Part shown: positions 10,031 to 26,070 of the stretch, in pieces
How positions within the stretch are numbered: the stretch's first letter is position 1
Layout of the letters: every line of letters begins with the position of its first letter
IMG/VR virus record: IMGVR_UViG_3300028829_003504
Span: 62,001-126,000 of that record
Reading direction: 5' to 3' (one strand)
DNA length: 64,000 bases
Notes under the pieces: model-generated
What the model saw: the letters and a program-made list of their open reading frames with translations, nothing else
Databases searched by the model: none
What the model was told of the DNA's origin: nothing
Translations under genes and position numbers: made by a program

Positions 10031-10429
10031 ATGAATACAGAAATTTCAACGAGTATTATTTACTCCGACTTAAACGCCCAAGCTTACATTACGCCTTATG
10101 ACATTGTAACTAATGTCGACGAGGCAGTACAGCGCCTACTTCTAGTACTAGCTACTCCGAAACGTACTAGGTGGAAGCGACCAGGCTTCGGTTCCCTTGT
10201 AGGTAACTTCCTATTCGATCCGATGGATTTAATAACAACGGAGCGTATACGAAACGAAATTCAGGATAGCGTTACTGATCCTGAGAACGACTTAACGGAC
10301 ATAACACTAGGTGAACTCGAAGTCGTACCCGATTACAATACAAGTAGTTACTACGTGAGAATTAAACTATCAATACCGAATCTACAAGACGATAAAGTCG
10401 TTGAGTTCGGATTAAGAGCAGGAGCCTAA
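10031..10429 (+). CDS. baseplate wedge / sheath initiator, gp25-like
   Basis: LATPKRTRWKRPGFGS...FLFDPMD matches the gp25/GPW family pattern (T..GER...P.FG....LF.P). Confidence 0.85.
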   Translation: MNTEISTSIIYSDLNAQAYITPYDIVTNVDEAVQRLLLVLATPKRTRWKRPGFGSLVGNFLFDPMDLITTERIRNEIQDSVTDPENDLTDITLGELEVVPDYNTSSYYVRIKLSIPNLQDDKVVEFGLRAGA

Positions 10430-10431
10430 TA

Positions 10432-11892
10432 ATGGCAAACAAACCTTTAAGTAAAGTAACTGTTAATTTTGAGGAATCTGTAGCCGAGCTTCTGTCAAAG
10501 TTTTCAGATAGCCTACCTTGGGCGAACAAACTAAAGTCTAACGTAGGTACCGTTCTAACAGATATGATTGCAGGTACTGCTACTAATAACCAATTCTATA
10601 TAGAGTTTGCCGCGCGTGAGGCCTTCCTTAAGACAGCAAAGCGGTATAGCTCAGTGTATGCGTTAACACGTAGCCTAGGTGTACGTATAGTAAGACGTAC
10701 TAGTGCAAAGACTACCGTTTCTGTTCAGAACACAAGTACATCCCAAATATTCATTCCAGCCTATGATAGCTTTGAGCTTGAGGGCCGTCCGTTCTACAAT
10801 AGAGAAGGTTTAATGTTTGAGCCTGCTGAGGTAAAACAGTTTGTTTTATTTGAAGGTATCATACAACGCAAAGAACTGAAATTATCGGAACTAGCTACCA
10901 ACTCTTTAGAAATAATAGTAGGGGAGCCTGGTTTTGTTATTAGTGATGACGATGTTAGGGTATTTACCACGGACCCTACAGGAACTATGACTGAATGGAC
11001 TAGACACGATGGCTCCCTTTTTGAACTTAATTCGGAAGATACTAAATTCTTCGATGCCACAACCGGAGACGGCGACGTTTCTTTACTTTTTGGTGATGGT
11101 ACTTTTGGCTCTGTTCCTGGATCAGATAGTACACTTACTATCGTATATGCCATAACTAGTGGGACTGATGGCAACCAAGGCCTATCAGGACTTAAAGTTA
11201 ACTACGCTAAGAACGATTTAATAACAGGTCAAAACATTGAGTCTATATTTGGAGGCACTGGTATTAAAGATAAGGTTTACTATAAAAAGTATGCGCCTTT
11301 CATGTACAATAGTAAGAAACGTATGGTTAGCCCCAGTGACTGGCATGGTAATATAGGCCTATATCCAGGAGTGGGTGATTTAAGTATCCTCAGCCAACGA
11401 GACATTGCACCTAATGACCCATCATGGCAGAACGTGGTTCGCGTATGTATATTGCCCGAAAACGGAAGCTCGTGGGGTGGTCAGAATCCAAGTCCTGAAT
11501 CGGCAGTGTGGACTGAATTCCTCAAGTGGGCTAAGAAACGCGTACGACCTAACACTACTATTCAGCCGTGGAATCCAAGTAAAATTCTTACAGACATAGT
11601 AGTCGAAGTAGCGGTATTCGAGGAGGTAGACACACAGTTGATGAAGGATTTATTAACCACAGTTATCAGCGGAATGTTCACGCATACTCCGGGCACTTTA
11701 GGTAAAGCTTTTACCCGTAGTGACTTAGATGAAGCCATAAAATACGACGATGATCAGCGTAGAGACGGCATAGATTACGTTAAGATAGTCAGTCCTATTG
11801 AAGATATTGAACCTAGTACAAGGCTAGAGTTTGTTAGTCCTAAAAGCATAACCGTTCTGGTACGTTATACAGAACGTGAATCATTCCTATAA
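10432..11892 (+). CDS. baseplate wedge protein (gp6 / baseplate J-like)
   Basis: REAFLKTAKRYSSV, LLFGDGTFGSVP, IVYAITSGTDGN and RMVSPSDW motifs; follows the gp25-like gene. Confidence 0.85.
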   Translation: MANKPLSKVTVNFEESVAELLSKFSDSLPWANKLKSNVGTVLTDMIAGTATNNQFYIEFAAREAFLKTAKRYSSVYALTRSLGVRIVRRTSAKTTVSVQNTSTSQIFIPAYDSFELEGRPFYNREGLMFEPAEVKQFVLFEGIIQRKELKLSELATNSLEIIVGEPGFVISDDDVRVFTTDPTGTMTEWTRHDGSLFELNSEDTKFFDATTGDGDVSLLFGDGTFGSVPGSDSTLTIVYAITSGTDGNQGLSGLKVNYAKNDLITGQNIESIFGGTGIKDKVYYKKYAPFMYNSKKRMVSPSDWHGNIGLYPGVGDLSILSQRDIAPNDPSWQNVVRVCILPENGSSWGGQNPSPESAVWTEFLKWAKKRVRPNTTIQPWNPSKILTDIVVEVAVFEEVDTQLMKDLLTTVISGMFTHTPGTLGKAFTRSDLDEAIKYDDDQRRDGIDYVKIVSPIEDIEPSTRLEFVSPKSITVLVRYTERESFL

Positions 11893-11902
11893 GTGAGTCA
11901 GC

Positions 11903-14900
11903 ATGGAAAAGAACTTATTAGACGTATTTCTTGAGTACACTAGAGGTAATCCCCTTTGGGATGACTTTATAAATGCTCTTGATGAATTCAACCAAGAACA
12001 GATACTATCTCCTATTAAAGAGCTTGAAAGTATACGTAACATTAATAGTAACACGGACCCTGTATTTATAGATAAAACCATTAGACAGCTAGGCTTAACT
12101 ATTAATAACCAACTGCTTAGTGCCAACCGTGAAAATATACATAAACTGTTCCACATGCTACCTCTGTATCATGAACTTTCTGGTACACCTAAGTTTCCTA
12201 GGTTTATAGAATTCTTACTAGGCAGGGGTTTTCGGGCAACACCTATGTATACGGTTGACTACCAAGATTTCTACGCAAAACCTAAAGGTAAGCTAGTTAC
12301 AGAAGGAGGCCTATGGTACAGTACTTCTCATATTGAGCTTTCTGTTGATGCTCAAGGCATAGAAGACTCTTTCAGTTTACGTATTGAACGCCGCGATCTA
12401 GTCGGCTTACTTGAAGCAGGCTTTACTCAAGAACAAATAAATGAACTTCGAGGTGTGGCCTTAGATTCGAATATACATGATAGATTTATAGTTGAGCATA
12501 TCATCCATAATAGAATAATTGAACTCTATTATGAGTTTGCTCCTATAGAAGACGTAGTAAAGCATATAGCCTTAGCACTTCCTGTAAGTGGTCAGGTGTT
12601 TATCGCAGGGTCAGTTACGATAAAGCCTAAAGAATATATAAAGTTAGACGAAAATGGAATTAAACGCCTAGAACTCATAGCGCCTTCAATAGTATATGGC
12701 CTTGAGGTATACAGCTTCAACATGAAGGTAGTATTGTCGGACGACAGCGAGGTAACACAGCCATGCCATTTGCTAAGCACTCTTCCTGAAGGCCTAGCAT
12801 CGAACAACGGGTCTAATATAGTGTTCAATGACGTTATGACTCAGACCGAGGTTCAGGTTACTGTCCTTTATCAAGGTACTTCTTTCCATAAGACAGTCCA
12901 GTTAATTCCGTTAGGTGTTCCTGCGGTACCTGATTCAGTATTCATTAGCGGTAAACGTAGAGTACTTGAAGGATTGACTGCTCAATTCAAATTGTACGGT
13001 GACTTCGGTTTTGAGCGTAAGCCTGTATTAGACCAAGATAACGTTGAGTGGTTAATAGATACAGATGATGCCTATTTCGAAGGAAGTATATTACACATTA
13101 GCGAAATATATGCAGAACAAAGTGCCGTAGTTACTGCCAATTACTTTGATTCTGATAATGTCCTACAGACGAATAGCATTAGCATAGATATAATTAACTC
13201 AGTTAAAGAAGTTAAGCCTATAGATTTAACTATTAATGTACCTACAGAAATGTTACAAGGTCAGAACTATACGATTACCGTTGACGCCAAGTACTCCGAC
13301 GGAAGCGTTAAAGAAGTTAGTGCTCACTTAAAGGCAGTTAGTAACAAAGCCAAGTTTAATTTTGATGGTGTTGTATATTCACCTGTAGTATCGCGGGATT
13401 ATGATACCACATTCATTGCTGAATTCCAAGACAAAGGAGTGGCCCTGACGAAAGAGCAAAAAGTTACTTTCGTCTACCCTAAACTAGAAGTGTTTAAGCT
13501 TACTGCCTTAGTTCCAGATTCAATCGAAGAAGGTACGCGACTGCCTCTAAGTTGTATAGCCCATTGGTGCAAAGCCAGTGATTTACCTTTAGTGCAATCT
13601 AAGATCAAAACAGAGCAACAAGTACAACTGTTTACTTCCGAAACGCAAGCTGCATGGAAACCTATAGGTATACATACCTTTGCAGCAGGAGCTGAGGGTT
13701 TTACATCTGACACAGAGATAGTAGCAGTAGAGGACGTAACAATTGATGGAAATCTATTAATAGTTCCTCAAGTAGACCAGACAAGCGACTTGATTATTGA
13801 AGCGCGTATAACTACTGAATCAGGTTTGAATGTTACAACCACAAAGTACATTCAAATTAAACCTATCGAGAATCGTATTGAAAGCGTGAAGATCTCAATT
13901 AGACAGAAACTATTTGAGGGTGAGAGCAACACCATGGCCATTGTAGCTAGCTGGTCGGACGACACTCAAACAGAACTTAAAATAGGTACGGAAGGTTCTT
14001 CGGTAGTCTCCGCTCAAGTATTGCATGAGGACGGGCTTGCACATCCTGAGCTTTATTTCGAGGATAACATTTTAAGATATACAGGTACGATTAGCGGTAT
14101 TAGCACTGTAACTGTCTATGTTCAATATACTCACATTAATTTGGATGGGGAGGAAGAGATACAATCTATACAAGAAACCGCATTGGTGTCAGTTGTACCT
14201 AAGATTGTACTTACGGATAGCATTAGAGTATTTGCCCCTGAGTCTAGGACTCTGGAGGACGGAACTTGGGCTATACCTAATAGAAGTCGCATGTTTATAA
14301 GAACAGAAGCCGAGTTTGAAGATGGTACTGTAGAAGATATAAAACCTGTTATTACTCCTTCGATGTTTATACCTTATAAAGAACAAGACGTACCTATAAA
14401 TGTAGTTACGGGTGATTTTGCTCTCAGAGATATGGTTAACATTCTTACTAATAAGACCCCAGAGGAGATCTACGCAGAATTAGCCAAGAAGTATTTTGGG
14501 TATTTCGACGTACAGTGGGTTCCAGAAGATAGAACTTTAATCTATATTGAAAATGATAAAGGTGAAGGGGTCAGTACAAGCATAGATAACATCACTGACT
14601 TTGGTCTCATTAGAAATCACCCAGACCTAATGTCCTACGTCGAATTCGAAGCCGTTAAAGAGATTACAGATTTTGACAGGCAGGTTACTAGGACATTAGT
14701 CCAAGCATCCAAAGTCAATGAAGAAACTGAAATAGAGTTGGCCTTTAGGTATTTCAAAGAGGAAATGGAACAAACAATCTTTATCCTAGAGCGAGAAACA
14801 CAGGCACATAACTTAATACTAAGTAAACGTATCACAGGTCCTATGGAATTCTATGGCAACGTACCTGCGGTAAGCTATGCCTTATACGTAAACTTCGATG

Positions 14901-16591
14901 ACAGAGGTGAAGAGTACGGAGTGTCGAATGACTGGGAACTTACCATACTTAATAAGCGTGAGGTTATGATTGCGCTAGGTATGCACTTTGAGATAGAGGA
15001 CTTTGAAGACAAGACCGACGAAACTCTTAATCAAATAATGCCTGATAGAAAGATTGTGGATATTGATGAAAATGGTTATGTATATCCTAAAGAAAACGTC
15101 GATGCCTTACTTAATATTAAAGCTTTGTATGATGACGGTAAAACTTCTTTCGAGCGTGACCTAGATGTTCAAATGCGTAGAGCCAATACCTACTTAGAAC
15201 GTCTATCTATAGTAGGCCCAAGTACTATAGAGGATATAGATGATGTTAATCTTGTCCTGGACGGAGCCATGAGTCACGTACCTTACAAATTACTCCTGTG
15301 GCGCGTAGGTGCCACAACGCCTGAGGAAGTAGTAGGCTTCTGGACTCTAGAGCAAAGTACCTCAAGTAGCGAGCAGGACTTACTAGGCATAAACGTGGGA
15401 GAGGGTGACGGTAAACTTTACATTAAAACTCAAGTAGAAAACCAGGATATATTCTTAGTAGCTTATTACGAAGAACAGTTTGATGATAGGCGCGAGTGGT
15501 TAGGTAAACGTAAGCGGATATTTATAAATGCTAATAGAGCAGTGAATAAGGTAAAGATAGATCCTGTTGGAGGCATAATTAACGATAATGGTATAATGCA
15601 GCTAAACGCTACTGTAACTCTAGAGGATGGGTCGCAAGTCCCATTGAGTCCTAACCAGGAGCAGACGTGGATAATAGTAGATAGTCCTGAGGGTCTTGAG
15701 ATTTCGGACAGCGGCCTTCTTACTATACCTAAACTTCACACCAATGCGGATGTTACTGTATCGGTAAATGTATTCAGTGGCAGTATATCAGTAGAGCACT
15801 CAATTACCTTTCTTGTTACGGCACGTAATGCCTTACAAGGTTTACGTATAGCAGGATATAAAGATATACGTGACGATTCAGTTATTCAAACTCAGGCCGT
15901 TTTGTTTAGGTCCAGCGATACGATAATGGACTATACAGCCGGTGAATTGGAAGGTACTAATTTCTGTAATACTAAGGAGTGCGTAACTAACGATTGCCAA
16001 TGGTCCATTAAAAGAGTCGATGGACTTAACACAGATAAAGTTAGCATTAACGAAGCTACAGGCTTACTGACTGTAGGAGCCTTTGATAAAGATTTCGGTC
16101 TCGAAATTACTGCTGAATATGCAGAGCCTGGGCAACCTACTGTTACACATAGTATAGTCATGGTAGTACATAGTTCCTTGCCTCGTTTCGGTATAGGTGA
16201 TTACGGAATTATCAATGAAGTTGAGATGAATACCCTTAGTAATAGAGTTAACAACCTTGATAAGGGAGGTAGCTTTAATATTAACGCGGAAGGTCCTACT
16301 GGAAGTACTAAGTATGGTTACTTTGCGCATAGAAAAGAGTTCGGTCGAGCAGTAGTTAAATCCATTAGTGAGTCTACAGACCATGGCTCTTGGGATGGGG
16401 CTAATTGGTCGATTGATGCGGCTGACTATGAGACGGAGACGGAACGACAGAATGCAATTACCAACTTTGGTACTGACCCTATAGAGATTGAAGTGTCTTA
16501 TGATAACTCGACTGATATTTGGTATCTATATCGTACTGAAAAGAATAATTTTGGTTTTGGTGAATTTGCCTACTACTATACAGTAGAATAG
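11903..16591 (+). CDS. large baseplate wedge / tail protein with multiple Ig-like repeats
   Basis: N-terminal gp7/gpI-like wedge region (IRQLGL...YHELSGT...IEFLLG), then repeated beta-sandwich units (A.YSDGS..V; W.I; IDENG.V; G.LTI). Confidence 0.7.
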   Translation: MEKNLLDVFLEYTRGNPLWDDFINALDEFNQEQILSPIKELESIRNINSNTDPVFIDKTIRQLGLTINNQLLSANRENIHKLFHMLPLYHELSGTPKFPRFIEFLLGRGFRATPMYTVDYQDFYAKPKGKLVTEGGLWYSTSHIELSVDAQGIEDSFSLRIERRDLVGLLEAGFTQEQINELRGVALDSNIHDRFIVEHIIHNRIIELYYEFAPIEDVVKHIALALPVSGQVFIAGSVTIKPKEYIKLDENGIKRLELIAPSIVYGLEVYSFNMKVVLSDDSEVTQPCHLLSTLPEGLASNNGSNIVFNDVMTQTEVQVTVLYQGTSFHKTVQLIPLGVPAVPDSVFISGKRRVLEGLTAQFKLYGDFGFERKPVLDQDNVEWLIDTDDAYFEGSILHISEIYAEQSAVVTANYFDSDNVLQTNSISIDIINSVKEVKPIDLTINVPTEMLQGQNYTITVDAKYSDGSVKEVSAHLKAVSNKAKFNFDGVVYSPVVSRDYDTTFIAEFQDKGVALTKEQKVTFVYPKLEVFKLTALVPDSIEEGTRLPLSCIAHWCKASDLPLVQSKIKTEQQVQLFTSETQAAWKPIGIHTFAAGAEGFTSDTEIVAVEDVTIDGNLLIVPQVDQTSDLIIEARITTESGLNVTTTKYIQIKPIENRIESVKISIRQKLFEGESNTMAIVASWSDDTQTELKIGTEGSSVVSAQVLHEDGLAHPELYFEDNILRYTGTISGISTVTVYVQYTHINLDGEEEIQSIQETALVSVVPKIVLTDSIRVFAPESRTLEDGTWAIPNRSRMFIRTEAEFEDGTVEDIKPVITPSMFIPYKEQDVPINVVTGDFALRDMVNILTNKTPEEIYAELAKKYFGYFDVQWVPEDRTLIYIENDKGEGVSTSIDNITDFGLIRNHPDLMSYVEFEAVKEITDFDRQVTRTLVQASKVNEETEIELAFRYFKEEMEQTIFILERETQAHNLILSKRITGPMEFYGNVPAVSYALYVNFDDRGEEYGVSNDWELTILNKREVMIALGMHFEIEDFEDKTDETLNQIMPDRKIVDIDENGYVYPKENVDALLNIKALYDDGKTSFERDLDVQMRRANTYLERLSIVGPSTIEDIDDVNLVLDGAMSHVPYKLLLWRVGATTPEEVVGFWTLEQSTSSSEQDLLGINVGEGDGKLYIKTQVENQDIFLVAYYEEQFDDRREWLGKRKRIFINANRAVNKVKIDPVGGIINDNGIMQLNATVTLEDGSQVPLSPNQEQTWIIVDSPEGLEISDSGLLTIPKLHTNADVTVSVNVFSGSISVEHSITFLVTARNALQGLRIAGYKDIRDDSVIQTQAVLFRSSDTIMDYTAGELEGTNFCNTKECVTNDCQWSIKRVDGLNTDKVSINEATGLLTVGAFDKDFGLEITAEYAEPGQPTVTHSIVMVVHSSLPRFGIGDYGIINEVEMNTLSNRVNNLDKGGSFNINAEGPTGSTKYGYFAHRKEFGRAVVKSISESTDHGSWDGANWSIDAADYETETERQNAITNFGTDPIEIEVSYDNSTDIWYLYRTEKNNFGFGEFAYYYTVE

Positions 16592-16631
16592 CAGTAATTT
16601 AAACTAAAGAAACAATTAAGGAAACTTTGAT

Positions 16632-18986
16632 ATGCCTGATATTATTAGCCTCGCAGATAAGCTGCGAATGACTACAGCAGGTAAGCAGTCTGCACTTAAC
16701 GCTGACCAAGGTGGAGTTTGGGTAGTACCTAAGTCTTTCGCTGTTGGTACCTTTACTGGAAGTGTTCCAAGTACCGTGCCTGATGATCTGCTTACAAGTC
16801 CCCTATATGGGGGCAATATACATTACGCTGAGGTAGTCAGTGAGCAATCCGTCCGTTTCACATTTGATATACCTACATCTGTAGGCACGGAAGCAGGGAT
16901 ACCAATCGGTGAGGTAGTTATATATCTAGATGATGGCACAGCATTCGCACACGCAGTACTAGCGGAACCTTACGTAAAGCGTAAGGGAATAGGTGTTCGC
17001 ATAGAAGCTATGCTGCATATATTAGAAGCACCTGCCGCAGTTATTAATGTTACATTAAGCGAATTAGGAAGTATTCCTAGCGTTGCCAATGTGGAAGCAT
17101 TACCTAGCCCTGTAACATCACTATCAAATGCTATTAGCGTCCTAGACTTAGTACAGAATGTAGATGGTTCTACTAGCCCGGGCGTTGTATGTAAGTATGG
17201 TAACGGAGGCCAACATTGGGGCTTCTATGGATATAGCCGTATATTCAGTGAGGCTTTAGGTATAGGTAATGCAGTATCTCCTGCTGAACTTAATCAGTCA
17301 ACTGCTATAACTGAATTTGAATTACAAAATGGTGACGAGTTTATTATCCAAGTAATATCGGGTAATGGTGCAGGCGAAACCCGACTATTCAAACTGAATG
17401 GAAGTGACGAAAACGCCAGCTTCGTAGCAGTAGGTTCCGCATTTACGGCCTTGAGTGATAATTCAGTTGTTAGTATATGGGCTCCAATTGGAGCTAGTGG
17501 TTCATCAGGATGTGCTTGGCCCCCACAAGCCGACGGAGTACCTACAGACTGGGTACTTACTAAGGGTGAAGATAGTTGTCCTGTATGGTCGCCTCCTTAT
17601 AAAAACAAAGCACAATCAATTACCCTGTACCGGGAGCCTAGCAAGTTAGAGCTAAAGCCTTTTAATACCATGGCTACTTCTGACCGTATGACTTATGATA
17701 TAGGAGATGTGTTCCCCGAGAACAATAACTTTGCCTTAGTTAATACTCAGGGTATAAATCAACATCGTAATGCTTTTGATGTAGTTGAAAACCGTATTGA
17801 GTTTAGTCAACGCCTAGTTAACCAGATCATTCTTGACATACGTACGTTCACAAGAGCACCAAGCTCAGGTACTAAGTTAATATGGCATACTGGTGAGCAT
17901 ACTGGTAATGGTAGTACTCAAGAGTTTGATATGCCTAGCTATATCGACAGTCCTGAGTTAGCAATTATTACCGTCGACCATGCGCAGCAAGCCCTTACCT
18001 CCTATACTTTAGATAAAGATAGAAGTAAGATTATCTTTACCGAAGCGCCACCTGCAGGTTCTGTTATTCAGATTAGAACAGTTGAGTATATACAGGAGGA
18101 AGGCTTTAGTACTGATATCGTTAGTGTGTCTATGAAGACTTCTGATCTTACAAACGTAATACTTCTTCCTATATCACCTGAGTCTAAAGACCAAGTATTC
18201 GTCAGTGAGCAGGGCTTCTGGGTACACGCCTCTAGTTATGAAGTAGTAGACAATCGTGTTATCTTCAATGGTTCAATTGAGCCAGAGACAAGCATGGAAG
18301 TTTTAGTATTCCAGAATATACGTGCCGAAGGTGTTGCTAGTGCTGACGTTAAAGGAATGGTAGTAGGTGCTGTAGCTACGGCTAAAGGTATTGAATTAAT
18401 ACGACATAATGCACCTAGTATAAAGTTACCTGCACCTGAATTCACTATCAAATCAGGCAGTGGTACCCGTGTGACAGGTCAGTACCCTGAATTCCTTATT
18501 GAAAGTACATTGGCTGAACAGATAGCAAAAGATAGCTTCAATAGTTTTAACGTCCAAGCTAAAGAAGAAGATGCCGAGCAAATTCTTATTACACAACGTA
18601 TTGAATTTAAAGGGGATATAATAGTACAAGCTAACGCGGACTTAATGGCTGAGCTTGGACCTGGTTTCATATCAGAAAGCGGATATGAGCGTGGTCAATT
18701 CGTACTAGGTGTAAGAACTACAGGTACAGTAGAGCCTGAGTATGGCCGCGGTATTAAAGGTACTGGTGAGTTTGGCATTAAAGCTGTTAGTGAGACACAA
18801 GCACAAGCATCAGGCTATGGTAATGCCAGTGTTACGCAATCGTGGAACATAATTAAAGCCAATCATCCTGCAGGCTATATAGACATTGTTGCTAAGATGC
18901 GTATATCTGACGCAAACATCAGTAAGTACGGAAGTAAACTTACAGCACTTTTAAACATAGTAGTGCTTCCTCAATTAGGTTCTTAG
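16632..18986 (+). CDS. tail fibre / baseplate-attached fibre protein
   Basis: N-terminus resembles tail-collar fibre domains (MTTAGKQSALNA; IGEVVIYLDDGTAFA). Repeated G.GST.EF...Q...Y....I.F.EAP units follow. Confidence 0.7.
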   Translation: MPDIISLADKLRMTTAGKQSALNADQGGVWVVPKSFAVGTFTGSVPSTVPDDLLTSPLYGGNIHYAEVVSEQSVRFTFDIPTSVGTEAGIPIGEVVIYLDDGTAFAHAVLAEPYVKRKGIGVRIEAMLHILEAPAAVINVTLSELGSIPSVANVEALPSPVTSLSNAISVLDLVQNVDGSTSPGVVCKYGNGGQHWGFYGYSRIFSEALGIGNAVSPAELNQSTAITEFELQNGDEFIIQVISGNGAGETRLFKLNGSDENASFVAVGSAFTALSDNSVVSIWAPIGASGSSGCAWPPQADGVPTDWVLTKGEDSCPVWSPPYKNKAQSITLYREPSKLELKPFNTMATSDRMTYDIGDVFPENNNFALVNTQGINQHRNAFDVVENRIEFSQRLVNQIILDIRTFTRAPSSGTKLIWHTGEHTGNGSTQEFDMPSYIDSPELAIITVDHAQQALTSYTLDKDRSKIIFTEAPPAGSVIQIRTVEYIQEEGFSTDIVSVSMKTSDLTNVILLPISPESKDQVFVSEQGFWVHASSYEVVDNRVIFNGSIEPETSMEVLVFQNIRAEGVASADVKGMVVGAVATAKGIELIRHNAPSIKLPAPEFTIKSGSGTRVTGQYPEFLIESTLAEQIAKDSFNSFNVQAKEEDAEQILITQRIEFKGDIIVQANADLMAELGPGFISESGYERGQFVLGVRTTGTVEPEYGRGIKGTGEFGIKAVSETQAQASGYGNASVTQSWNIIKANHPAGYIDIVAKMRISDANISKYGSKLTALLNIVVLPQLGS

Positions 18987-18987
18987 T

Positions 18988-21156
18988 ATGATTAATGAAA
19001 TTCGTTTAAGGACGTTTACTTCGCAGGTTGGAGAGGATAATGAAGTTCTCTCCAGAGACCCGAAGCAGAACGCTATAGAATACGAAGGAGATACAGGTCC
19101 CAATACTAGATTAGTTGAGGATGTCGCCTTCAATAAAAAACTAGGTGTACTAACATTCATTAGAAACAACGGTGAAGTCATTGAAGCAAGCGGGTTCTTA
19201 ACAGAGGATCAGATAGGGCACGGCCCTAAAGGTAAGGTAGGTAGAATAGGTAAAGCAGGTCGTGATGGTGAAGAAGGCCGACTAGGTAAAGAAGGACCTG
19301 CTGGATGTGAAGGTGCGCAAGGTAATGCGGGCGATAAAGGGATGTCAGGTAGAGATGGTGAGGATGGTCCTGTAGGTATAGCAGGTACTTCTGGATGTGA
19401 AGGAGATGTAGGCCCTGAGGGTGACGAAGGGGATAAAGGTCCTAAAGGATTCCAAGGATCGATGGGTAAAGACGGGTTAGACTGTATCATAGGCTGTCCT
19501 GGACCTAAAGGGGAACAAGGTTTAGGTACTTTTGTAGTACAAAAGGAAACACCTACTGAGGAGCACGTATACTTATGGGGCGTTCCTTTTGAGAGCGTTT
19601 TACCTGAGTTACCCAAAAAGCCTGATGATATGTCAGCTTCAATCAATTCTATAGTAGTTACTATGACTAAGGATAGAGGTACTACTTATACTGCTTCAGG
19701 CTCTTTAATAGTGAGCGACTTTAAAGGTGGTGTAGGACCTTTCTCTATCATTTGGACAGGTGACTATAAAGCTAAGTTAGGTATAACTAAGGATAGTATA
19801 AGTAACGACAGCCTAAGATTATCACTTGATGCCTCCGCTGAAATAGAACCAGGTGAGGTTGCTGAGATTGCTGGCGATGCCGTTGTTACCATAACGGATA
19901 CGTCAAATGGTAAACAGCTAGTTTTACCTACTACGTATGAATTTAAAGGGAGCAACAGTACGGTAGTTGCTCCTCCCATATACGGTAACGTACGTGATGC
20001 AGCCGTTGTTGAAGGTGATGACTTAAAGTTCTTAGTAACTACTACGAGTCCTTTACTCTCATCAGTACGAATCACATATACGCTAAAGTCAGGAACAGCA
20101 GGAACCTCCGACTACAAGGATTTGGGTCAAGGTTACATGGACTTAAGCATAGGCGTGGACCAGTTCTACGTTAATGTAGAAGCAATACGCGATTCTATAC
20201 CTAACGAAGATGTGGAAACAATGTCGGTTACTGTTAGTATTCCTGGCGTATCTGAATTAAATGCAGGTGATATGACAGCAATAGGTACTATTACTGAGGC
20301 TGATAGCCATATAGTACCTATTGTCCTAGGGCCTGCAGTGGTGACGGAGGGAAGTACTGCAAAAATAACCATCAGGCTAGGTGGTTCTTACATAGAAGGT
20401 GTCACCGGCGGCTACGCAGTTAAGTATAGAACATTATCGGATACAGCGGGTACGTCGGACTACGTAGCTCGGTCTGGGACTCTAACTTTCACCTATAGTT
20501 GGGAAGAGAAAGTCATTGAAATAGCAACAATAGATGATTCTATTGTTGAAGCCACTGAGCAGTTTTATTTTGAGTTGTACGATGCAGGTGCACATCTTGA
20601 CTTAGGTGGAGATACTAAAAAAGTTACGGTTACAGTTAATGACAATGACGAAACTTATAGGGGTTCTACCGGCGGTGGGTGTATAGGATGGGGTGCGAAA
20701 GTTGAAACGCCTGAAGGTACTACATCTATAGAGACTGTATTGATAGGTGATACTATCCTAGGATACGCTGAGCCTAGTATGTCAACAAGTGCTAATTCAA
20801 ACGATCCAGAAGTATTAAACTGGCACGCCCTTGAGTTAAGAGGCAAACGTGCTTGGGTTATGGTTACAAATGCTAGGCATGATACATACCCTCAATACAA
20901 AGTTATCAACGATCTTAACTTAACTTTCGATCATCCTGTCATGACTAAGCGTGATGGCGTATGGCAGTGGCTACCTGCCCTGCAAGTTATAGTTAGTGAT
21001 ATTGTCCTAGGCACTGATAGTCAAGAAGTCCCAGTTACAATAGCTACAGAAGTATACAAAGAACTTAAAGTAGTAGAGCTTGACGTTGAGCCTCACGATG
21101 TCTATTATGTTAACGACATACTAGTCCACAATGTGAATAAAATTGTACATAAGTAA
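18988..21156 (+). CDS. collagen-like fibre protein with two Calx-beta domains and a C-terminal Hint domain
   Basis: About 32 Gly-X-Y triplets; Calx-beta motifs (V.EG...Y.T.SGTAGTSDY; GTLTF...K.I.I.TIDD.IVE..E.F); GGG|C...TFDH...VHN. Confidence 0.85.
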   Translation: MINEIRLRTFTSQVGEDNEVLSRDPKQNAIEYEGDTGPNTRLVEDVAFNKKLGVLTFIRNNGEVIEASGFLTEDQIGHGPKGKVGRIGKAGRDGEEGRLGKEGPAGCEGAQGNAGDKGMSGRDGEDGPVGIAGTSGCEGDVGPEGDEGDKGPKGFQGSMGKDGLDCIIGCPGPKGEQGLGTFVVQKETPTEEHVYLWGVPFESVLPELPKKPDDMSASINSIVVTMTKDRGTTYTASGSLIVSDFKGGVGPFSIIWTGDYKAKLGITKDSISNDSLRLSLDASAEIEPGEVAEIAGDAVVTITDTSNGKQLVLPTTYEFKGSNSTVVAPPIYGNVRDAAVVEGDDLKFLVTTTSPLLSSVRITYTLKSGTAGTSDYKDLGQGYMDLSIGVDQFYVNVEAIRDSIPNEDVETMSVTVSIPGVSELNAGDMTAIGTITEADSHIVPIVLGPAVVTEGSTAKITIRLGGSYIEGVTGGYAVKYRTLSDTAGTSDYVARSGTLTFTYSWEEKVIEIATIDDSIVEATEQFYFELYDAGAHLDLGGDTKKVTVTVNDNDETYRGSTGGGCIGWGAKVETPEGTTSIETVLIGDTILGYAEPSMSTSANSNDPEVLNWHALELRGKRAWVMVTNARHDTYPQYKVINDLNLTFDHPVMTKRDGVWQWLPALQVIVSDIVLGTDSQEVPVTIATEVYKELKVVELDVEPHDVYYVNDILVHNVNKIVHK
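20680..21132 (+). other. Hint (intein-like / BIL-type) autoprocessing domain, about 151 aa
   Basis: Block A CIGWGAKVETPEG, block B LTFDHPV, blocks F/G VVELDVEPHDVYYVNDILVHN. The +1 residue is Val and there is no endonuclease insert. Confidence 0.85.
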
Positions 21157-21166
21157 GGAGAATTAA

Positions 21167-21799
21167 ATGTTAACTAGACCTCCTATGGAATCAGTTAATG
21201 CTAACGGTACTGCCAGTCAGACTGACGTTATAGTTAAAGACGGGAAGTTAGCTGCGGGTAACAAAGAAGATAGTCAAACCGCTGAGGTACAAGATATATT
21301 CTTCGATTCTACTGTCGGTATTCTCGTCATAGAGTTTACTAATGGTGAGACTAAGCGTGTATCTGGGTTCCCTACGTTCGGAACTATACCGGATGGTCCT
21401 GCAGGTCCTACAGGCGACCCTGGTGAAGACGGAAAAGAGGGACGTGACGGACGTGACGGTGAAACAGGAGCACCTGGATGCTTCGGGCCTATTGGACCTA
21501 AAGGAGTAGAGGGTGATCCCGGACGCAATGGCGAAGATGGAGCACCCGGAGCACCTGGACCTAAAGGCTGTCCTGGTCCAGCAGGTAATAAGGGACCTAA
21601 AGGGGAACCTGGAGATGTGGGGGAACCTGGAGTACAAGGACCTCCAGGTGATACAGGTCCTCAAGGCCCTGAGGGTGAGCGTGGTCCAGCAGGTAAAATC
21701 AACTATATCATAAGTACATCAGACCCAGGAACTAGCGCAGGTGCTGGCAGTATATGGATTAATCCTAACATTACAGAAACCAGCCCGGCTTGGCCGTAG
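21167..21799 (+). CDS. collagen-like fibre protein
   Basis: MLTRP N-terminus, about 33 uninterrupted Gly-X-Y triplets and a [13 protein letters not shown] cap. Confidence 0.85.
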
Positions 21800-21807
21800 G
21801 AGTTAGT

Positions 21808-22875
21808 ATGAGTGACGTTAAAACCAATATGCTAGATATCGGACATATTAGCGGTGACTTACGAGTCCAAGATGGAACGCTTAAAATTGTCCCTGATTCT
21901 ATGACGCCTAATGGCAATGTTACAGGATATATTGATAAAACAGGAGTCTTGACTATTGACATACCTGGCCACGGTACTATACAAGCAAACGGATTCCTAA
22001 CGCGTGCTGATATCGGTCAGGGGCATGAAGGCAATAGGGGAAATGAAGGCAGTAATGGAACTGACGGATCGATAGGATTAGATGGCTCCAAAGGTGTTAT
22101 AGGTGATAGGGGAGAAGTAGGTAGTAGAGGCGTACCTGGAGTAAGAGGACCCAGAGGCATGCAAGGCAGTTTTGGCCAAAATGGCAATAGTGGTGCGGAG
22201 GGAGTTAAAGGAGATGACGCCTTTGTTAATATGTTTATACAGGAGTCAGACCCAGGGGCTCCAGGCGCAGGCGCAGTATGGGTTAAACCTATATACACCC
22301 ACCTGCAAGAAGCCATTGCTGATATACAAGCCAATTGTAGTAGTGATGAAGATGAAGATACAGAGGAATTACCAGTCATTGAAGGTGATTCGGAATCACA
22401 TCCTTATACAAGTGATGGACATGCTACAGGTAGCTTAGTCGTTTACTTCGATACAAGTACGTACACCACTTTAGAAGACAGCGGTAAGGAATTCATACGT
22501 GTAGAAGAAGAAGAAAGATTCATACTAATACTTAGACTACTTTCGCCGTTACCTATTGATGCTGTATTCCAAGTGAAACTTAGAGAGGACCCTACTAATA
22601 TTGCATGGGCGGGATTCAAATGGGATTCAGATGACGCTAAGGGTACTGTAGAAAGAACACTTACAATACCAGCAGGTAAGTTAGTCTCTGATGAACTTAC
22701 CGCTTACGTTCCTGAGGATTGGGTAATCGCAAGCGATAGCGGTTATGGCGAACTTGCAATTTCGTCCGATTCAGGTAACAATCAAATAATGATTGACGAA
22801 AGTACGTACCAATTTGTCAGTGATTCCCCCAAATTGAACTATATTAAGATGCGAGTCTATCCTAAGATTTCGTAG
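21808..22875 (+). CDS. collagen-like fibre protein with C-terminal beta-rich domain
   Basis: GF.T...IG collagen lead-in, about 21 triplets and DPGAPGAGAVWVKP. Start placed at the ATG after a GGAG RBS (the track starts at 21790). Confidence 0.8.
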   Translation: MSDVKTNMLDIGHISGDLRVQDGTLKIVPDSMTPNGNVTGYIDKTGVLTIDIPGHGTIQANGFLTRADIGQGHEGNRGNEGSNGTDGSIGLDGSKGVIGDRGEVGSRGVPGVRGPRGMQGSFGQNGNSGAEGVKGDDAFVNMFIQESDPGAPGAGAVWVKPIYTHLQEAIADIQANCSSDEDEDTEELPVIEGDSESHPYTSDGHATGSLVVYFDTSTYTTLEDSGKEFIRVEEEERFILILRLLSPLPIDAVFQVKLREDPTNIAWAGFKWDSDDAKGTVERTLTIPAGKLVSDELTAYVPEDWVIASDSGYGELAISSDSGNNQIMIDESTYQFVSDSPKLNYIKMRVYPKIS

Positions 22876-22902
22876 TATTACATAATTTTCTAAACACGTG
22901 AG

Positions 22903-23400
22903 GTGCTTATGTTAACAAGACCACCACTAAATGCAATTGATGCTGGAGCCGAAAGCGGTGACGTAACTTCAAATGCACTTAATCTACAAGTAGAATCTAT
23001 TGACGATAGTATAGCGACTGAGCTTGGTGCTAAATACGATTCAGTCAATGGCTCTCTAGTTATATCATTCCCAGGATACCCACACCTTAGGATAAACGGC
23101 TTCATGACGCCTATTCATATTAAAGAAGGCAGACAAGGTAAACCTGGGTATGAAGGCAGAGAAGGAATCGAAGGCACTATAGGATCTGACGGAGAGCAAG
23201 GCCAGCAAGGATGTTTAGGCCCAGAGGGTCCTCAGGGACGTCCAGGTCAACGTGGACCTAGAGGTCAGATGGGTTCTCAAGGTGAGATTGGTCCTACGGG
23301 TCCTGATGGGGCTAAAGGAGAGCCTGGAGAATTTCTAGTCTATATACAGAACGACGAACCCGTAGGGGTGGAGCACGGTGCGCTGTGGGTGAAACAATAA
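22903..23400 (+). CDS. collagen-like fibre protein
   Basis: MLTRPP N-terminus, about 22 Gly-X-Y triplets and a GALWVK cap. Confidence 0.85.
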   Translation: MLMLTRPPLNAIDAGAESGDVTSNALNLQVESIDDSIATELGAKYDSVNGSLVISFPGYPHLRINGFMTPIHIKEGRQGKPGYEGREGIEGTIGSDGEQGQQGCLGPEGPQGRPGQRGPRGQMGSQGEIGPTGPDGAKGEPGEFLVYIQNDEPVGVEHGALWVKQ

Positions 23401-23412
23401 TTAGGAACTAAT

Positions 23413-26070
23413 ATGGCACTTAACTTAGAACTATCAAGTTCGAATGAAAAGTCAGTACTATACGATGGTGAGTACGGAGATTTAGACTACATAGAAAGCT
23501 CCTTAACTTTATATTTTAGTGTAGAAGGAACTAGCTCGTATTCTGTTACGATTATCGATGCGGATACAGGAAACGACCAGACGTCTATCGTACAAGTCGG
23601 TCAGGGAACACTAACCATAGACCTTCGTATTCTAAAAAGTTATTTCACAATAGGTACTACCGTATTCGGTGGTACTGTTGTGTTACAGATAGACGATAAT
23701 GATAGTACTGATACTGGTCAGTTTAACATCGACTTCCATTTCGCCGTTACAAATAACGCAGTATACGTGGCTCCAGTGACATTCGGCCTCAGTACAAACG
23801 GTATTGCCATTAGTACTGAGTTACAGCGCAGTAGTGGTATTGATTTCGTTGAGCGCGCCGCGTATCCTACGGTAGAAGTACTTGGAGGCTCAGGTCCTTT
23901 CGAGTACACTTGGGTTCCTGCAAACTTTGAACACTTCTTAATAGAATCAGTAGAAGGTCTTGATACAGACAAACCTACCGTAAACTATAAACTCGATGTT
24001 GCGTCGGACCTACCTGAAGAACTATTTAATTCCGATGGAGGCAAGTGGACTCAGACAGGTATATTTAACGTAAGCGTTCGAGATACCAGTAACGGTGATA
24101 TCTCGTTAGGAGAAGTATCCTGGAGCTTCACTGTTAGTGTACAGGAGGAGGAAAGAGGCGACTCGGTAGTTAAAGAAAGCAGAATCATACCAGGACGATT
24201 TAGAGTACGAAACCCTCTCAATAGCTTCTGGTATGACTTATGTTATTATGAAATGTACGTCTTTGATAAAGATTACCTACAGTGGATTAGACTATTCCCT
24301 AATAAGGTGTTTGTGCGCGATGGAGGCAGCAGTGATTGGATTGAAATAGGTTGCATTACTGATACTTCCTATGACGACCCTTGTGCAGGCTTCGGGTCAG
24401 GTACCGATTGTTCAGGTGAACCTCAAGATCCTCTTGCGGGATCTGGTGATGGATTTGGTTCTAATGGTCCTTCATACGATGTCGATACAGGATATCCTGC
24501 AGGCTTTGATATGCCTGACAGCTCACTCGGTGGCTACGGTATTAAGATTGCACCTAAAGCCACTGGTTACGATACTCCGGTAGGTTACATAATGCAGCGT
24601 CCCGGACTACAGTCGGAAGAATCTTATGATCCTACAGGTCTATCTGCCGATGAAGGCGCTCACGGTAAGTATAATAGTCCTAACTTAAATGGAGCCAGCA
24701 CTTGGGGTAGAGGTGCAGCGGTTACTGAGACTATATATGAATTACCTGCACAGAATGGTTATTACGAACTTCTCTATGCTGCTTACGATTCCGTTAGTAT
24801 CGATGTTTACTACGTAGGTCAGCGAGTAGCTACAACATGTGGACCTGTGCCTAAGTTGACGCGAGGTCTATTGACGTTTAATGTTAACATAGCGACAGGT
24901 CTAGGTGAAAGACGTATCATGATTAGGGTACGTGGTGCCGAGGATGTTAGATGGGCTTACCAAGTAGTAGGTCCTAAAGCTTCACCTGTGCTACAAGATT
25001 TCGATAACCAAGACGATGATGATTACGCAAATATCAATGAGTTTCTTTACGAAGAATCTGAAATGATGCAAACCCAGTACATAGGTACGCCTATGTTTCC
25101 TGCACCCTGTCACGGCACTGTAGGTAATGTAGATCAGACGTTTCCTTGGGCATTATCTGATAGAATTGAGACGCAAAACTGGTTTGAGTACTATCACTAT
25201 GTCGGCGAAAACGGGGGTCCAATGGTGCTCGATTTTAGCTCATGGGCAGCCGCTGACTACGTTGAAATCTGGCAAAATGGGGTTCGGATAGCTACATCTC
25301 AAGATTATAACCAAACTCCAGGCTATGTTGATTTTATATATGAAGCCCGTGAAGGCGTTCAAGATATAATGGTTAGAGTGCATACAGAATCAAAAGGTAT
25401 GGGTCAAGATTTAAGTACTTGGTACTATACACTATTCTGCCCTAACGCAATTGGCCACAGAAGACAACCATGGCCTTGTGGGCCTGACGTTATATACAGC
25501 ATGGGACATCCTGCCACAGAGGATAACTTTGATATAGATAACGGCGTCGAGCGTGGTGCCTTTAAAGTATACATGCGAGAGTGTACGGCTACTACATTAG
25601 TTAGAGTATTCAATAGAGACGGAGACTTGATAACGTCGATGACGGGCGAAGGTGACTTCGATGTAGAGGCTTTCAATTTCGATGTGGTTACAGGAGAAGT
25701 ACATAAGGATATATATGTACGTGTTGAGACTTCTATAGGGCATGGTTGGCAATACACCGTAAGTTGTCCAGTACCTTTACTTGATATAATACTAAAACCT
25801 GTAGACCCAAGTGTAGAGTGGTCTATAACCGATGAAATTATACAGGACGATTCTGAGTATGTCGAACTTATCGTAAGCATAAACAAAGCCCAATTGGTTG
25901 ATAGGTCTATTGATTGGGCTACTAGCAACGACACTGCGTATGACCTAACGGACTACTGTGCTGCTAACGGAACTGTGACAATACCTGCTGGACAGACTAG
26001 TATTAAGATTCAAATTAATTTAGCTCCTTGTGATGCTGAGGATGAGGATGAGGATGCACCTAGCACCTGA
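23413..26070 (+). CDS. acidic virion/fibre protein with repeated beta-sandwich domains and an incomplete C-terminal Calx-beta domain
   Basis: Three units ending W.Y.V/L.(C/G)P. The C-terminus IDWATSNDTA..LTDY....GTVTIPAGQTSIKIQI stops before the last Calx-beta strands. Confidence 0.75.
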   Translation: MALNLELSSSNEKSVLYDGEYGDLDYIESSLTLYFSVEGTSSYSVTIIDADTGNDQTSIVQVGQGTLTIDLRILKSYFTIGTTVFGGTVVLQIDDNDSTDTGQFNIDFHFAVTNNAVYVAPVTFGLSTNGIAISTELQRSSGIDFVERAAYPTVEVLGGSGPFEYTWVPANFEHFLIESVEGLDTDKPTVNYKLDVASDLPEELFNSDGGKWTQTGIFNVSVRDTSNGDISLGEVSWSFTVSVQEEERGDSVVKESRIIPGRFRVRNPLNSFWYDLCYYEMYVFDKDYLQWIRLFPNKVFVRDGGSSDWIEIGCITDTSYDDPCAGFGSGTDCSGEPQDPLAGSGDGFGSNGPSYDVDTGYPAGFDMPDSSLGGYGIKIAPKATGYDTPVGYIMQRPGLQSEESYDPTGLSADEGAHGKYNSPNLNGASTWGRGAAVTETIYELPAQNGYYELLYAAYDSVSIDVYYVGQRVATTCGPVPKLTRGLLTFNVNIATGLGERRIMIRVRGAEDVRWAYQVVGPKASPVLQDFDNQDDDDYANINEFLYEESEMMQTQYIGTPMFPAPCHGTVGNVDQTFPWALSDRIETQNWFEYYHYVGENGGPMVLDFSSWAAADYVEIWQNGVRIATSQDYNQTPGYVDFIYEAREGVQDIMVRVHTESKGMGQDLSTWYYTLFCPNAIGHRRQPWPCGPDVIYSMGHPATEDNFDIDNGVERGAFKVYMRECTATTLVRVFNRDGDLITSMTGEGDFDVEAFNFDVVTGEVHKDIYVRVETSIGHGWQYTVSCPVPLLDIILKPVDPSVEWSITDEIIQDDSEYVELIVSINKAQLVDRSIDWATSNDTAYDLTDYCAANGTVTIPAGQTSIKIQINLAPCDAEDEDEDAPST

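Follow-up and report, generated by a model that had tools for sequence, protein, structure and literature searches.

Three outcomes are known for Hint domains: protein splicing in inteins, sterol transfer in Hedgehog proteins, and cleavage in bacterial intein-like domains (BILs) and pretoxin Hints. Here we describe a Hint domain that ends a collagen-like fibre protein of 722 amino acids (aa), encoded in a 64,000-nucleotide stretch (the window) of the IMG/VR virus record IMGVR_UViG_3300028829_003504. Judging from the sequence and the modelled structure, we consider it likely that the last 158 residues of this fibre are an active Hint of the A-type-BIL kind that removes itself after translation.

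The α-amine freed by Asn cyclization was reportedly proposed as the route of A-type BILs by Dassa et al. in 2004, and the titles of that paper and of Aranko (2013) are said to point to a splicing route that does without a nucleophile at the +1 position. BILs are described as lacking a +1 nucleophile and as mainly cleaving (PMC7664689); those of the A type lack it too, and an alternative splicing mechanism is possible for them (PMC5874633). A-type BILs keep the terminal His-Asn pair, and BILs reside in variable regions of non-conserved proteins (PMC7765530). The reviews disagree on the outcome: in one, A-type BILs cannot ligate their flanks (PMC7765530), whereas the other allows complete splicing by an alternative mechanism (PMC5874633).

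The gene in question and the parts of its Hint module are located in the window as follows:

18988..21156, + strand: whole gene, a 722-aa collagen-like virion fibre protein with a C-terminal Hint module (open reading frame (ORF) listing, PHROG 38766, syntenic orthologues)
20671..20679, + strand: Gly562-Gly563-Gly564, the linker at the N-terminal junction; Gly564 is the -1 residue (codons ggc ggt ggg)
20680..21132, + strand: A-type-BIL-like Hint domain, Cys565-Asn715, 151 aa, without an endonuclease insert (AlphaFold2, Foldseek, profile)
20680..20682, + strand: Cys565 (Cys1), predicted nucleophile of the N-S acyl shift (invariant alignment column C4; codon tgt)
20923..20934, + strand: Thr646-Phe-Asp-His649, the TxxH motif of block B (columns T85 and H88)
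21097..21099, + strand: Asp704, the block F aspartate (column D143)
21127..21132, + strand: His714-Asn715, the block G pair; Asn715 is the predicted cyclizing residue at the C-terminal junction (columns H153 and N154)
21133..21153, + strand: seven-residue tail VNKIVHK; Val716 is the +1 residue (translation and DNA)
21139-21141 and 21151-21153, + strand: tail lysines Lys718 and Lys722 (DNA)

The interval 20671-21156 extends from the first Gly of the GGG linker through the stop codon. Its ends read ggc ggt ggg tgt (20671-20682) and cac aat gtg aat aaa att gta cat aag taa (21127-21156). Slippage-prone poly-G DNA was ruled out for the N-terminal junction, where the three Gly are encoded by ggc ggt ggg. 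The first-pass annotation of this DNA, made by eye from the sequence, had quoted the motifs GSTGGG, CIGWGAKV, LTFDH, ILVHN and VNKIVHK. All of them are present (with C565, T646, H649, H714 and N715, and a stop after VNKIVHK) and agree with the DNA, as do the Val at +1 and the count of seven residues after Asn715. It had also named the host a collagen fibre protein; indeed, Pfam places Collagen (E 3.4e-14) and Calx-beta (E 1.7e-13) in the same ORF.

In direct comparisons, the domain gave faint signals. Against Pfam it matched only Hint_2 (E 0.074, domain residues 4-31), below every cut-off, and a sequence search of the PDB returned the Pho RadA intein at a marginal E of 1e-3. Because the Pfam scan gave nothing stronger, assigning the domain to the Hint family needed a profile and a structural model; because the domain reaches no Pfam cut-off, the earlier call by eye caught what a routine scan misses. 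For the profile and for AlphaFold2, we used an alignment of 71 full-length homologous domains, 23-68% identical to the window’s domain. The profile matched the Tetrahymena BUBL1 BIL2 domain (6Y75) at E 3.5e-17 and the C. thermocellum BIL domain (2LWY) at E 4.2e-16, ahead of 8W20, a 1368-aa chain named only “Intein C-terminal splicing domain-containing protein” (E 1.3e-10), and of the best chain named as an intein (Pho RadA, E 1.4e-09). It thus ranks known BILs above inteins or Hog domains, in a proxy comparison that uses solved chains instead of a curated A-type BIL profile. When scanned against Pfam themselves, 50 of the 71 family members matched Intein_splicing and 46 matched PT-HINT (PF07591; best E 2.1e-11).

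The AlphaFold2 model of the last 158 residues has a mean pLDDT of 93.3 and a pTM of 0.89; confidence declines in the tail (mean 74 over residues 151-160, below 50 for the last three). A Foldseek search of the PDB with this model yielded 56 matches at E <= 0.001, and the best 50 listed were all BIL, intein or Hedgehog structures. The first was 2LWY (E 1.9e-08; TM 0.80 by target), followed by the gp41-1 intein and by 6Y75/6TMM (ranks 3-8), with Hedgehog (1AT0) at rank 32 (E 1e-04). Among predicted viral structures, the best matches were three proteins of Phage NCTB, then uncultured-phage proteins named for Hint, fn3 or PASTA domains. The horseshoe-like all-beta fold, Cys1 and TxxH are those of the Hint superfamily. 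The terminal His-Asn, the lack of Cys, Ser or Thr at +1, the lack of an endonuclease and the variable, non-conserved host proteins are those of A-type BILs. These matches go far beyond chance; by profile and model, the C-terminal 158 residues belong to the BIL branch of the Hint superfamily. The Hint fold and the BIL kind that had been proposed from the letters were both borne out: the catalytic C1, the T and H of block B, the D of block F and the terminal HN are present, and they are conserved family-wide.

How does the domain compare with the described systems? The best Foldseek match, the A-type BIL of C. thermocellum, shares Cys1, TxxH, the terminal His-Asn and the absence of both a +1 nucleophile and an endonuclease, and both occur in variable, non-conserved proteins of the extracellular type. 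In contrast to that BIL, the phage Hint ends its protein, carries a tail of 1-27 residues nearly always with one Lys, follows a Gly or poly-Gly linker, and is hosted by phage virion fibres; in the literature that we searched, we found no description of such a C-terminal position, Lys tail, Gly linker or phage-fibre host for BILs. The top profile match, BUBL1 BIL2 of Tetrahymena thermophila (6Y75, 6TMM), is likewise a BIL that releases an upstream module, and its tandem arrays with short linkers recur in the phage Hint family (HN/KGGGGC, the slash marking the junction). Its cargo, however, is ubiquitin-like, as opposed to the collagen and Calx-beta fibre of 564 aa that precedes the phage Hint, and the Gly-Gly end is not conserved among the fibre’s orthologues in cultured phages.

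The Hog domain of Hedgehog (1AT0) resembles the phage domain in its fold, in the order of cargo, Gly/Cys junction and C-terminal Hint, and in the thioester-based release of cargo, which is predicted here. Hedgehog is not known to have the terminal His-Asn, which is conserved in the phage Hint family. Hedgehog performs the N-S acyl shift only (PMC7664689) and has a sterol-recognition region past its Hint (PMC7765530), whereas the fibre Hint has only a short tail. The pretoxin-HINT domains (PF07591), matched by the 46 family members mentioned above, are likewise bacterial or phage Hints thought to cleave instead of splicing; they release a downstream, C-terminal toxin, whereas the cargo of the fibre Hint lies upstream, with only the short tail after it. 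Three classes were rejected. A canonical class 1 intein, with Cys, Ser or Thr at +1 and a conserved host protein whose halves are ligated, does not fit a Val at +1 with seven residues following, and the orthologues and paralogues without a Hint share no C-extein. A Hog domain is at odds with a 7-aa tail that leaves no adduct-recognition region and with the conserved His-Asn. A pretoxin-HINT would have a downstream toxin; this protein ends seven residues past the Hint, and the tail is no longer than 27 aa at 136 of 154 junctions.

A length-restricted homologue search recovered only 3 close relatives. An exhaustive search of 1.84 billion cluster representatives (E <= 1e-3) gave 479 proteins, and the family comprises at least 479 clusters at 50% identity. 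In all, 152 representatives were readable, and they provided 113 N-terminal junctions, 154 C-terminal junctions and 136 tails for the counts that follow. The Hint domain is nearly always the last element of its protein, and the host proteins have from about 90 to 5000 residues. In the alignment of 71 domains, C4 and N154 are invariant, and T85, H88, D143 and H153 are at least 90% conserved. Cys1 is found in 113/113 representatives and the terminal His-Asn in 153/154. The -1 residue is Gly in 84/113 (74%), and a run of at least two Gly precedes Cys1 in 65/113. Only 12 of 154 +1 residues are Cys, Ser or Thr (S 9, T 3, C 0); Ala (31) and Lys (30) are commonest, followed by Val (18), Ile (11), Phe (11) and Leu (9).

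The upstream cargo, examined in 93 representatives, includes collagen (17), fn3, PKD, Ig, Calx-beta, PASTA, Flg_new, the tail-collar fibre N-terminus and the gp38 adhesin; its PHROG matches are tail-fibre families, and the two family members that were placed on contigs are both found in arrays of phage-like genes. Some 20 junctions are either internal or tandem, and the joint HN/K-GGGG/C recurs among them. We prefer to read the poly-Gly run, which is seen again in the tandem arrays, as a part of the cassette that provides a flexible and unhindered linker. Proteins with at least two Hints and HN/K-GGGG/C linkers are P0096 (L007:4535-6430), P0141, P0067, P0043, P0115, P0093 and P0129. Some tandem-Hint proteins end in long Gly/Ser-rich tails, and P0096, on a phage-like 108-kb contig, adjoins LemA and an ion-channel gene.

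When the fibre is compared with the orthologue from a 311-kb metagenomic relative, identity is 70% in the Hint and 55-66% in the adjacent cargo domains. Its dN is 0.20, as opposed to 0.27-0.37 in the middle and Calx-beta domains (dS was saturated). Because its identity is higher and its dN lower than those of the neighbouring cargo, the module is, by this sequence comparison, under purifying selection: it is being maintained, not decaying.

A tail past the His-Asn is always present. It has 1-27 residues, most commonly seven, and the 136 tails represent 126 distinct sequences. Lys occurs in 133 of the 136; exactly one Lys is found in 120 (88%) and none in 3 (2%). When the pooled tail residues were redealt over the same lengths in 5000 shuffles, tails with exactly one Lys numbered 45.8 on average and 67 at most (vs. 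120 observed), and Lys-free tails numbered 51.6 on average and 36 at least (vs. 3 observed). Lys makes up 14.6% of tail residues and 3.6% of the same proteins, a 4.0-fold enrichment; Arg is not enriched (0.81-fold). As a control, the last seven residues of 133 ordinary ORFs from the window and the phage loci were inspected: 25% had exactly one Lys and 59% had none. A general C-terminal Lys bias was thus rejected as the cause, given 25%/59% in the controls vs. 88%/2% in the tails and the absence of Arg enrichment. The tail Lys lies at +1 to +10, or further out in two long tails, and is the last or next-to-last residue in 79/133; at internal junctions, it occupies +1 or +2 in 15/18. The window’s tail contains two Lys (K718, K722), and its two nearest relatives keep the terminal one.

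From these features we infer that cleavage takes place, that both junctions would be cut, and which nucleophile might resolve the resulting thioester. In the predicted scheme, Cys565, aided by Thr646 and His649, would attack the carbonyl of Gly564, and an N-to-S acyl shift would produce a Gly-Cys thioester. Asn715, aided by His714 and Asp704, would cyclize and thereby cut the chain before Val716. The thioester could then meet one of two fates. Resolution by water or a cellular thiol would leave a 564-aa fibre ending in ...GSTGGG and a free Hint of ~17 kDa, an outcome that fits a report of predominantly cleaved BIL products (PMC7664689). Alternatively, a tail amine could act in cis, which would join the short tail to Gly564. 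The candidate amines are the α-amine of Val716, which Asn cyclization would free, and the ε-amine of a tail Lys, which would create an isopeptide branch. The first-pass annotation had held that a Hint without a +1 nucleophile can only cleave or transfer its N-terminal part. The nucleophile is indeed missing, but excluding splicing was too strong, given the alternative splicing considered for A-type BILs (PMC5874633). Because A-type BILs are reported to splice sometimes without a +1 nucleophile, ligation of the seven-residue tail is a live outcome.

Judging from the sequence conservation and the model, the N-terminal junction is very probably processed in vivo. As for what resolves the thioester, we favour capture by the tail as the selected outcome because it alone explains the invariant His-Asn, the never-absent tail and the single Lys. 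Self-cleavage alone leaves the signature of poly-Gly, invariant His-Asn, obligatory tail and one Lys unexplained. Still, we name a tail amine as the selected nucleophile only tentatively, as a choice that may well prove wrong. A more specific form would make the family a self-contained, single-turnover, Lys-directed ligase, in which the ε-amine of the tail Lys captures the poly-Gly thioester and Asn cyclization discards the Hint; this form we think rather unlikely. In the literature searched, we found no natural Hint reaction with a Lys side chain that gives an isopeptide. In a bolder version, a Lys of a different virion protein or of a host-surface protein could also accept this thioester. 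We think it improbable that another protein or a small molecule serves as the acceptor. The module’s purpose may be timing, or the masking of the distal fibre end.

Several considerations weigh against this reading, and above all against capture by the tail. The window’s own tail carries two Lys, not one. Apart from its Lys, the tail is not conserved, and a ligated tail adds little to the fibre beyond one Lys. The Lys could serve otherwise, for example in recognition or in catalysis of hydrolysis. Because published BILs mostly cleave rather than ligate (PMC7664689), tail capture may be a minor product. Finally, the conservation of catalytic residues, a pattern in aligned sequences, reveals selection but does not identify the reaction.

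Could the thioester instead be resolved in trans, with the fibre’s C-terminal Gly ligated to a Lys of a virion protein, as in ubiquitin, or to a small molecule or host-surface nucleophile, as in Hedgehog, such that the fibre becomes covalently anchored? The Hedgehog-like topology of cargo, Gly/Cys and C-terminal Hint speaks for it, as do the -1 Gly in 74% of the family with poly-Gly common, the presence of BUBL BIL2, from a polyubiquitin-like locus, among the closest solved relatives, and the fact that the hair proteins of the related “hairy” myoviruses are unassigned (PMC6143709). Yet only 1-27 residues follow the Hint, leaving no adduct-recognition region, and pure N-terminal transfer requires neither an invariant His-Asn nor an obligatory tail. 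The first-pass annotation had based its proposal of ubiquitin-like ligation on a Gly-Gly/Cys junction. The -1 Gly proved common in homologues (84/113), but a run of two or more Gly is present in only 65/113, and the N-terminal junctions in cultured phages read TTG/C (Y3), TSG/C (AD1) and HQ/C (Sen-NF). With the second Gly not conserved in these orthologues and no trans acceptor having emerged, that proposal is unsupported; the single tail Lys offers an acceptor in cis instead, and the fibre’s N-terminal domain, common to paralogues without a Hint, is the likelier anchoring end. We consider trans resolution a distinctly unlikely account. A role that would be compatible with our favoured chemistry is that of a self-removing intramolecular chaperone or mask, which helps the distal end to fold or trimerize, or keeps that end inert, and then cuts itself off. 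The Hint forms the distal, C-terminal end of a fibre of the trimeric (collagen) type, the cargo modules across the family are beta-rich, extracellular and adhesive (collagen, fn3, PKD, Ig, Calx-beta, PASTA), the Hint is under purifying selection, and there is an analogy to the C-terminal chaperone domains of tailspikes or to the procollagen C-propeptide. The tailspike and fibre chaperones of the Peptidase S74 type resemble the Hint by analogy only, as self-cleaving C-terminal domains that are removed after assembly. Such chaperones are serine-lysine proteases, unrelated to Hint in fold and chemistry, and none of our searches returned a sequence or structural match to them. The idea of a self-removing folding chaperone, also raised in that annotation, gained no support: a Hint is absent from three adjacent collagen fibres that share the N-terminal domain, and an orthologous body of 873 aa occurs with and without one, which speaks against an obligatory role. 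In addition, the solved Hint domains among our matches are single-chain entries, and the single tail Lys would be left unexplained by a chaperone or a mask. We hold this role to be possible, if on the unlikely side.

Two further accounts dispense with a selected reaction or with cleavage. The Hint might stay uncleaved as a distal knob of the fibre, for instance as a binding domain, with its catalytic residues kept for structure; the label “virion structural protein” is in fact given to the orthologues over their full length. Hint relatives that are inactive tend to lose their catalytic residues, however, whereas here Cys1, TxxH, Asp and His-Asn are near 100% across domains that are only 23-40% identical, which is the pattern of a catalytic site rather than of a binding surface. 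We therefore regard a retained knob as very improbable. The poly-Gly, Hint and Lys tail might otherwise constitute a selfish or neutral cassette that spreads by recombination among fibre genes and persists since truncation would cost the fibre a tail that it needs. Its presence in an orthologous gene varies between close relatives, Phage NCTB has three copies, one of them stand-alone, the cargo is very diverse, and BILs have been described in variable regions of non-conserved proteins (PMC7765530). Against this, there is no homing endonuclease, a single stop codon could remove a C-terminal module and yet the Hint evolves more slowly than the adjacent cargo, and the tail has no conserved sequence besides its Lys that the fibre would need. 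A cassette of this sort strikes us as improbable.

What appears to be undescribed is the combination of poly-Gly, Hint and single-Lys tail as a cassette that caps the C-terminus of fibre or adhesin-like proteins of phages and is represented by at least 479 clusters. We found no paper or functional study on these phage-fibre Hints in the open literature searched; the literature on the term “Hint domain” together with phage and tail fibre yielded only inteins of terminases or of nucleotide metabolism. If a tail amine captures the thioester, as we tentatively favour, the cassette would represent a new natural route of protein ligation and a compact, traceless tool that needs no Cys, Ser or Thr at the junction. 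Should the Lys side chain be the captor, this would be a natural Hint reaction with a lysine nucleophile, a chemical cousin of sortase-pilin or ubiquitin chemistry at fibre tips. Self-excision by itself would mean that the fibre in its mature form is not identical to the product encoded by its gene, a point of importance when “hairy” jumbo phages are studied by virion proteomics, by cryo-EM model building or for their receptor binding. The question is directly testable in the cultured relatives Erwinia phage Y3 and Dickeya phage AD1.

These relatives are visible at the protein level only, because a DNA megablast of the gene against isolated phages gave no match. The C-terminal domain alone matches 54 phage records at 26-37% identity, nearly all of them ~260 kb jumbo myoviruses of Erwinia or Dickeya: Y3 (Sasquatchvirus), Alexandra and AD1 (Alexandravirus), Yoloswag, the pEa_SNUABM series, Phage NCTB and a few others. 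Syntenic orthologues of the whole gene are Erwinia phage Y3 gp110, Dickeya phage AD1 gp108 and a gene of Phage NCTB. The phages have a common module, in which large tail proteins are followed by the Hint-bearing collagen fibre, two or three short collagen fibres and a large protein. Because the records of Y3 and NCTB carry notes that name an intein domain (e.g., “putative phage tail protein, contains intein domain”), the Hint signature in this gene family is already on the database record. The ORF at 18988-21156 as a whole matches PHROG 38766, “virion structural protein,” at E 2.2e-64, and its C-terminal domain alone does so at E 4.1e-24.

The rest of the fibre and the genes that follow it are arranged as listed here:

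18988..19218, + strand: N-terminal domain, residues 1-77 (about 77 aa), common to three neighbouring fibre paralogues (paralogue alignment)
19219..19527, + strand: collagen-like Gly-X-Y region, residues about 78-180 (Pfam Collagen, E as above)
19528..20670, + strand: cargo body, with a middle domain (181-340), two Calx-beta stretches to about residue 554, and the linker YRGST (Pfam)
21167-21799, 21790-22875 and 22903-23400, + strand: three collagen-like fibre paralogues without a Hint (Pfam Collagen, common N-terminal domain)
23413..26070, + strand: 885-aa fibre or baseplate-associated protein, whose orthologue in a relative ends in a Hint

The N-terminal domain, likely the attachment or trimerization end, has the lowest dN within the protein (vs. 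the orthologue in the 311-kb relative), and G53, L55, G69, F70 and T72 are invariant in the alignment of the four paralogues, as is the Gly period of the collagen region. Of the two Calx-beta stretches, the better match covers residues 472-554. Because the three paralogues without a Hint share the N-terminal domain and the collagen region, the Hint is dispensable for this kind of fibre. Likewise, the Hint module has been gained or lost between close relatives, because orthologues of the 885-aa protein differ in having one. This protein is 77% identical over 873 aa to P0022 (L004:14606-18232), a protein of 1208 aa with an extra C-terminal segment of about 335 aa that ends in the same kind of Hint (residues 1048-1202), and the NCTB homologue, BN7874_132 (1305 aa), also ends in a Hint. 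We found no second Hint in the source contig (82,973-bp record, about 32% complete).

The Hint-bearing fibre probably belongs to the baseplate or tail-fibre apparatus; we assign it there because the upstream genes at 10031-18986 (132, 486, 1562 and 784 aa) match the baseplate module of the 311-kb metagenomic relative (L004:754-9999). That module opens with PAAR and gp25-like genes. The 784-aa protein gave weak matches to the N-terminal domains of T7 tail-fibre and tail-collar fibre proteins. Y3 and AD1 have been called “hairy Myoviridae,” and the proteins that form the hairs are unassigned (PMC6143709). The four collagen fibre genes are candidates for the hairs of these jumbo myoviruses.

Within Phage NCTB, the three Hint copies include BN7874_135 (L002:744-1205), a stand-alone Hint ORF of 153 aa that directly follows another Hint-bearing fibre gene. 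Only seven residues precede its Cys, and its tail reads KVD; this ORF may be a Hint in its own right or a fragment split off from a gene. Downstream of the window’s fibre gene, the next gene begins 11 bases past the stop codon and is preceded by an aggag ribosome-binding site. The four consecutive genes at 18988-23400 (722, 210, 361 and 165 aa) share the N-terminal domain of ~75 aa and the collagen region, and several of them carry Cys (G-C-x-G) inside the Gly-X-Y repeats, where disulfide knots between chains might form. The TTG start listed for the 361-aa collagen gene (21790-22875) gives an overlap of 10 bases with the gene before it, and this start and the gene’s length are only putative; the orthologue in the 311-kb relative has 405 aa (12846-14063 of L004).

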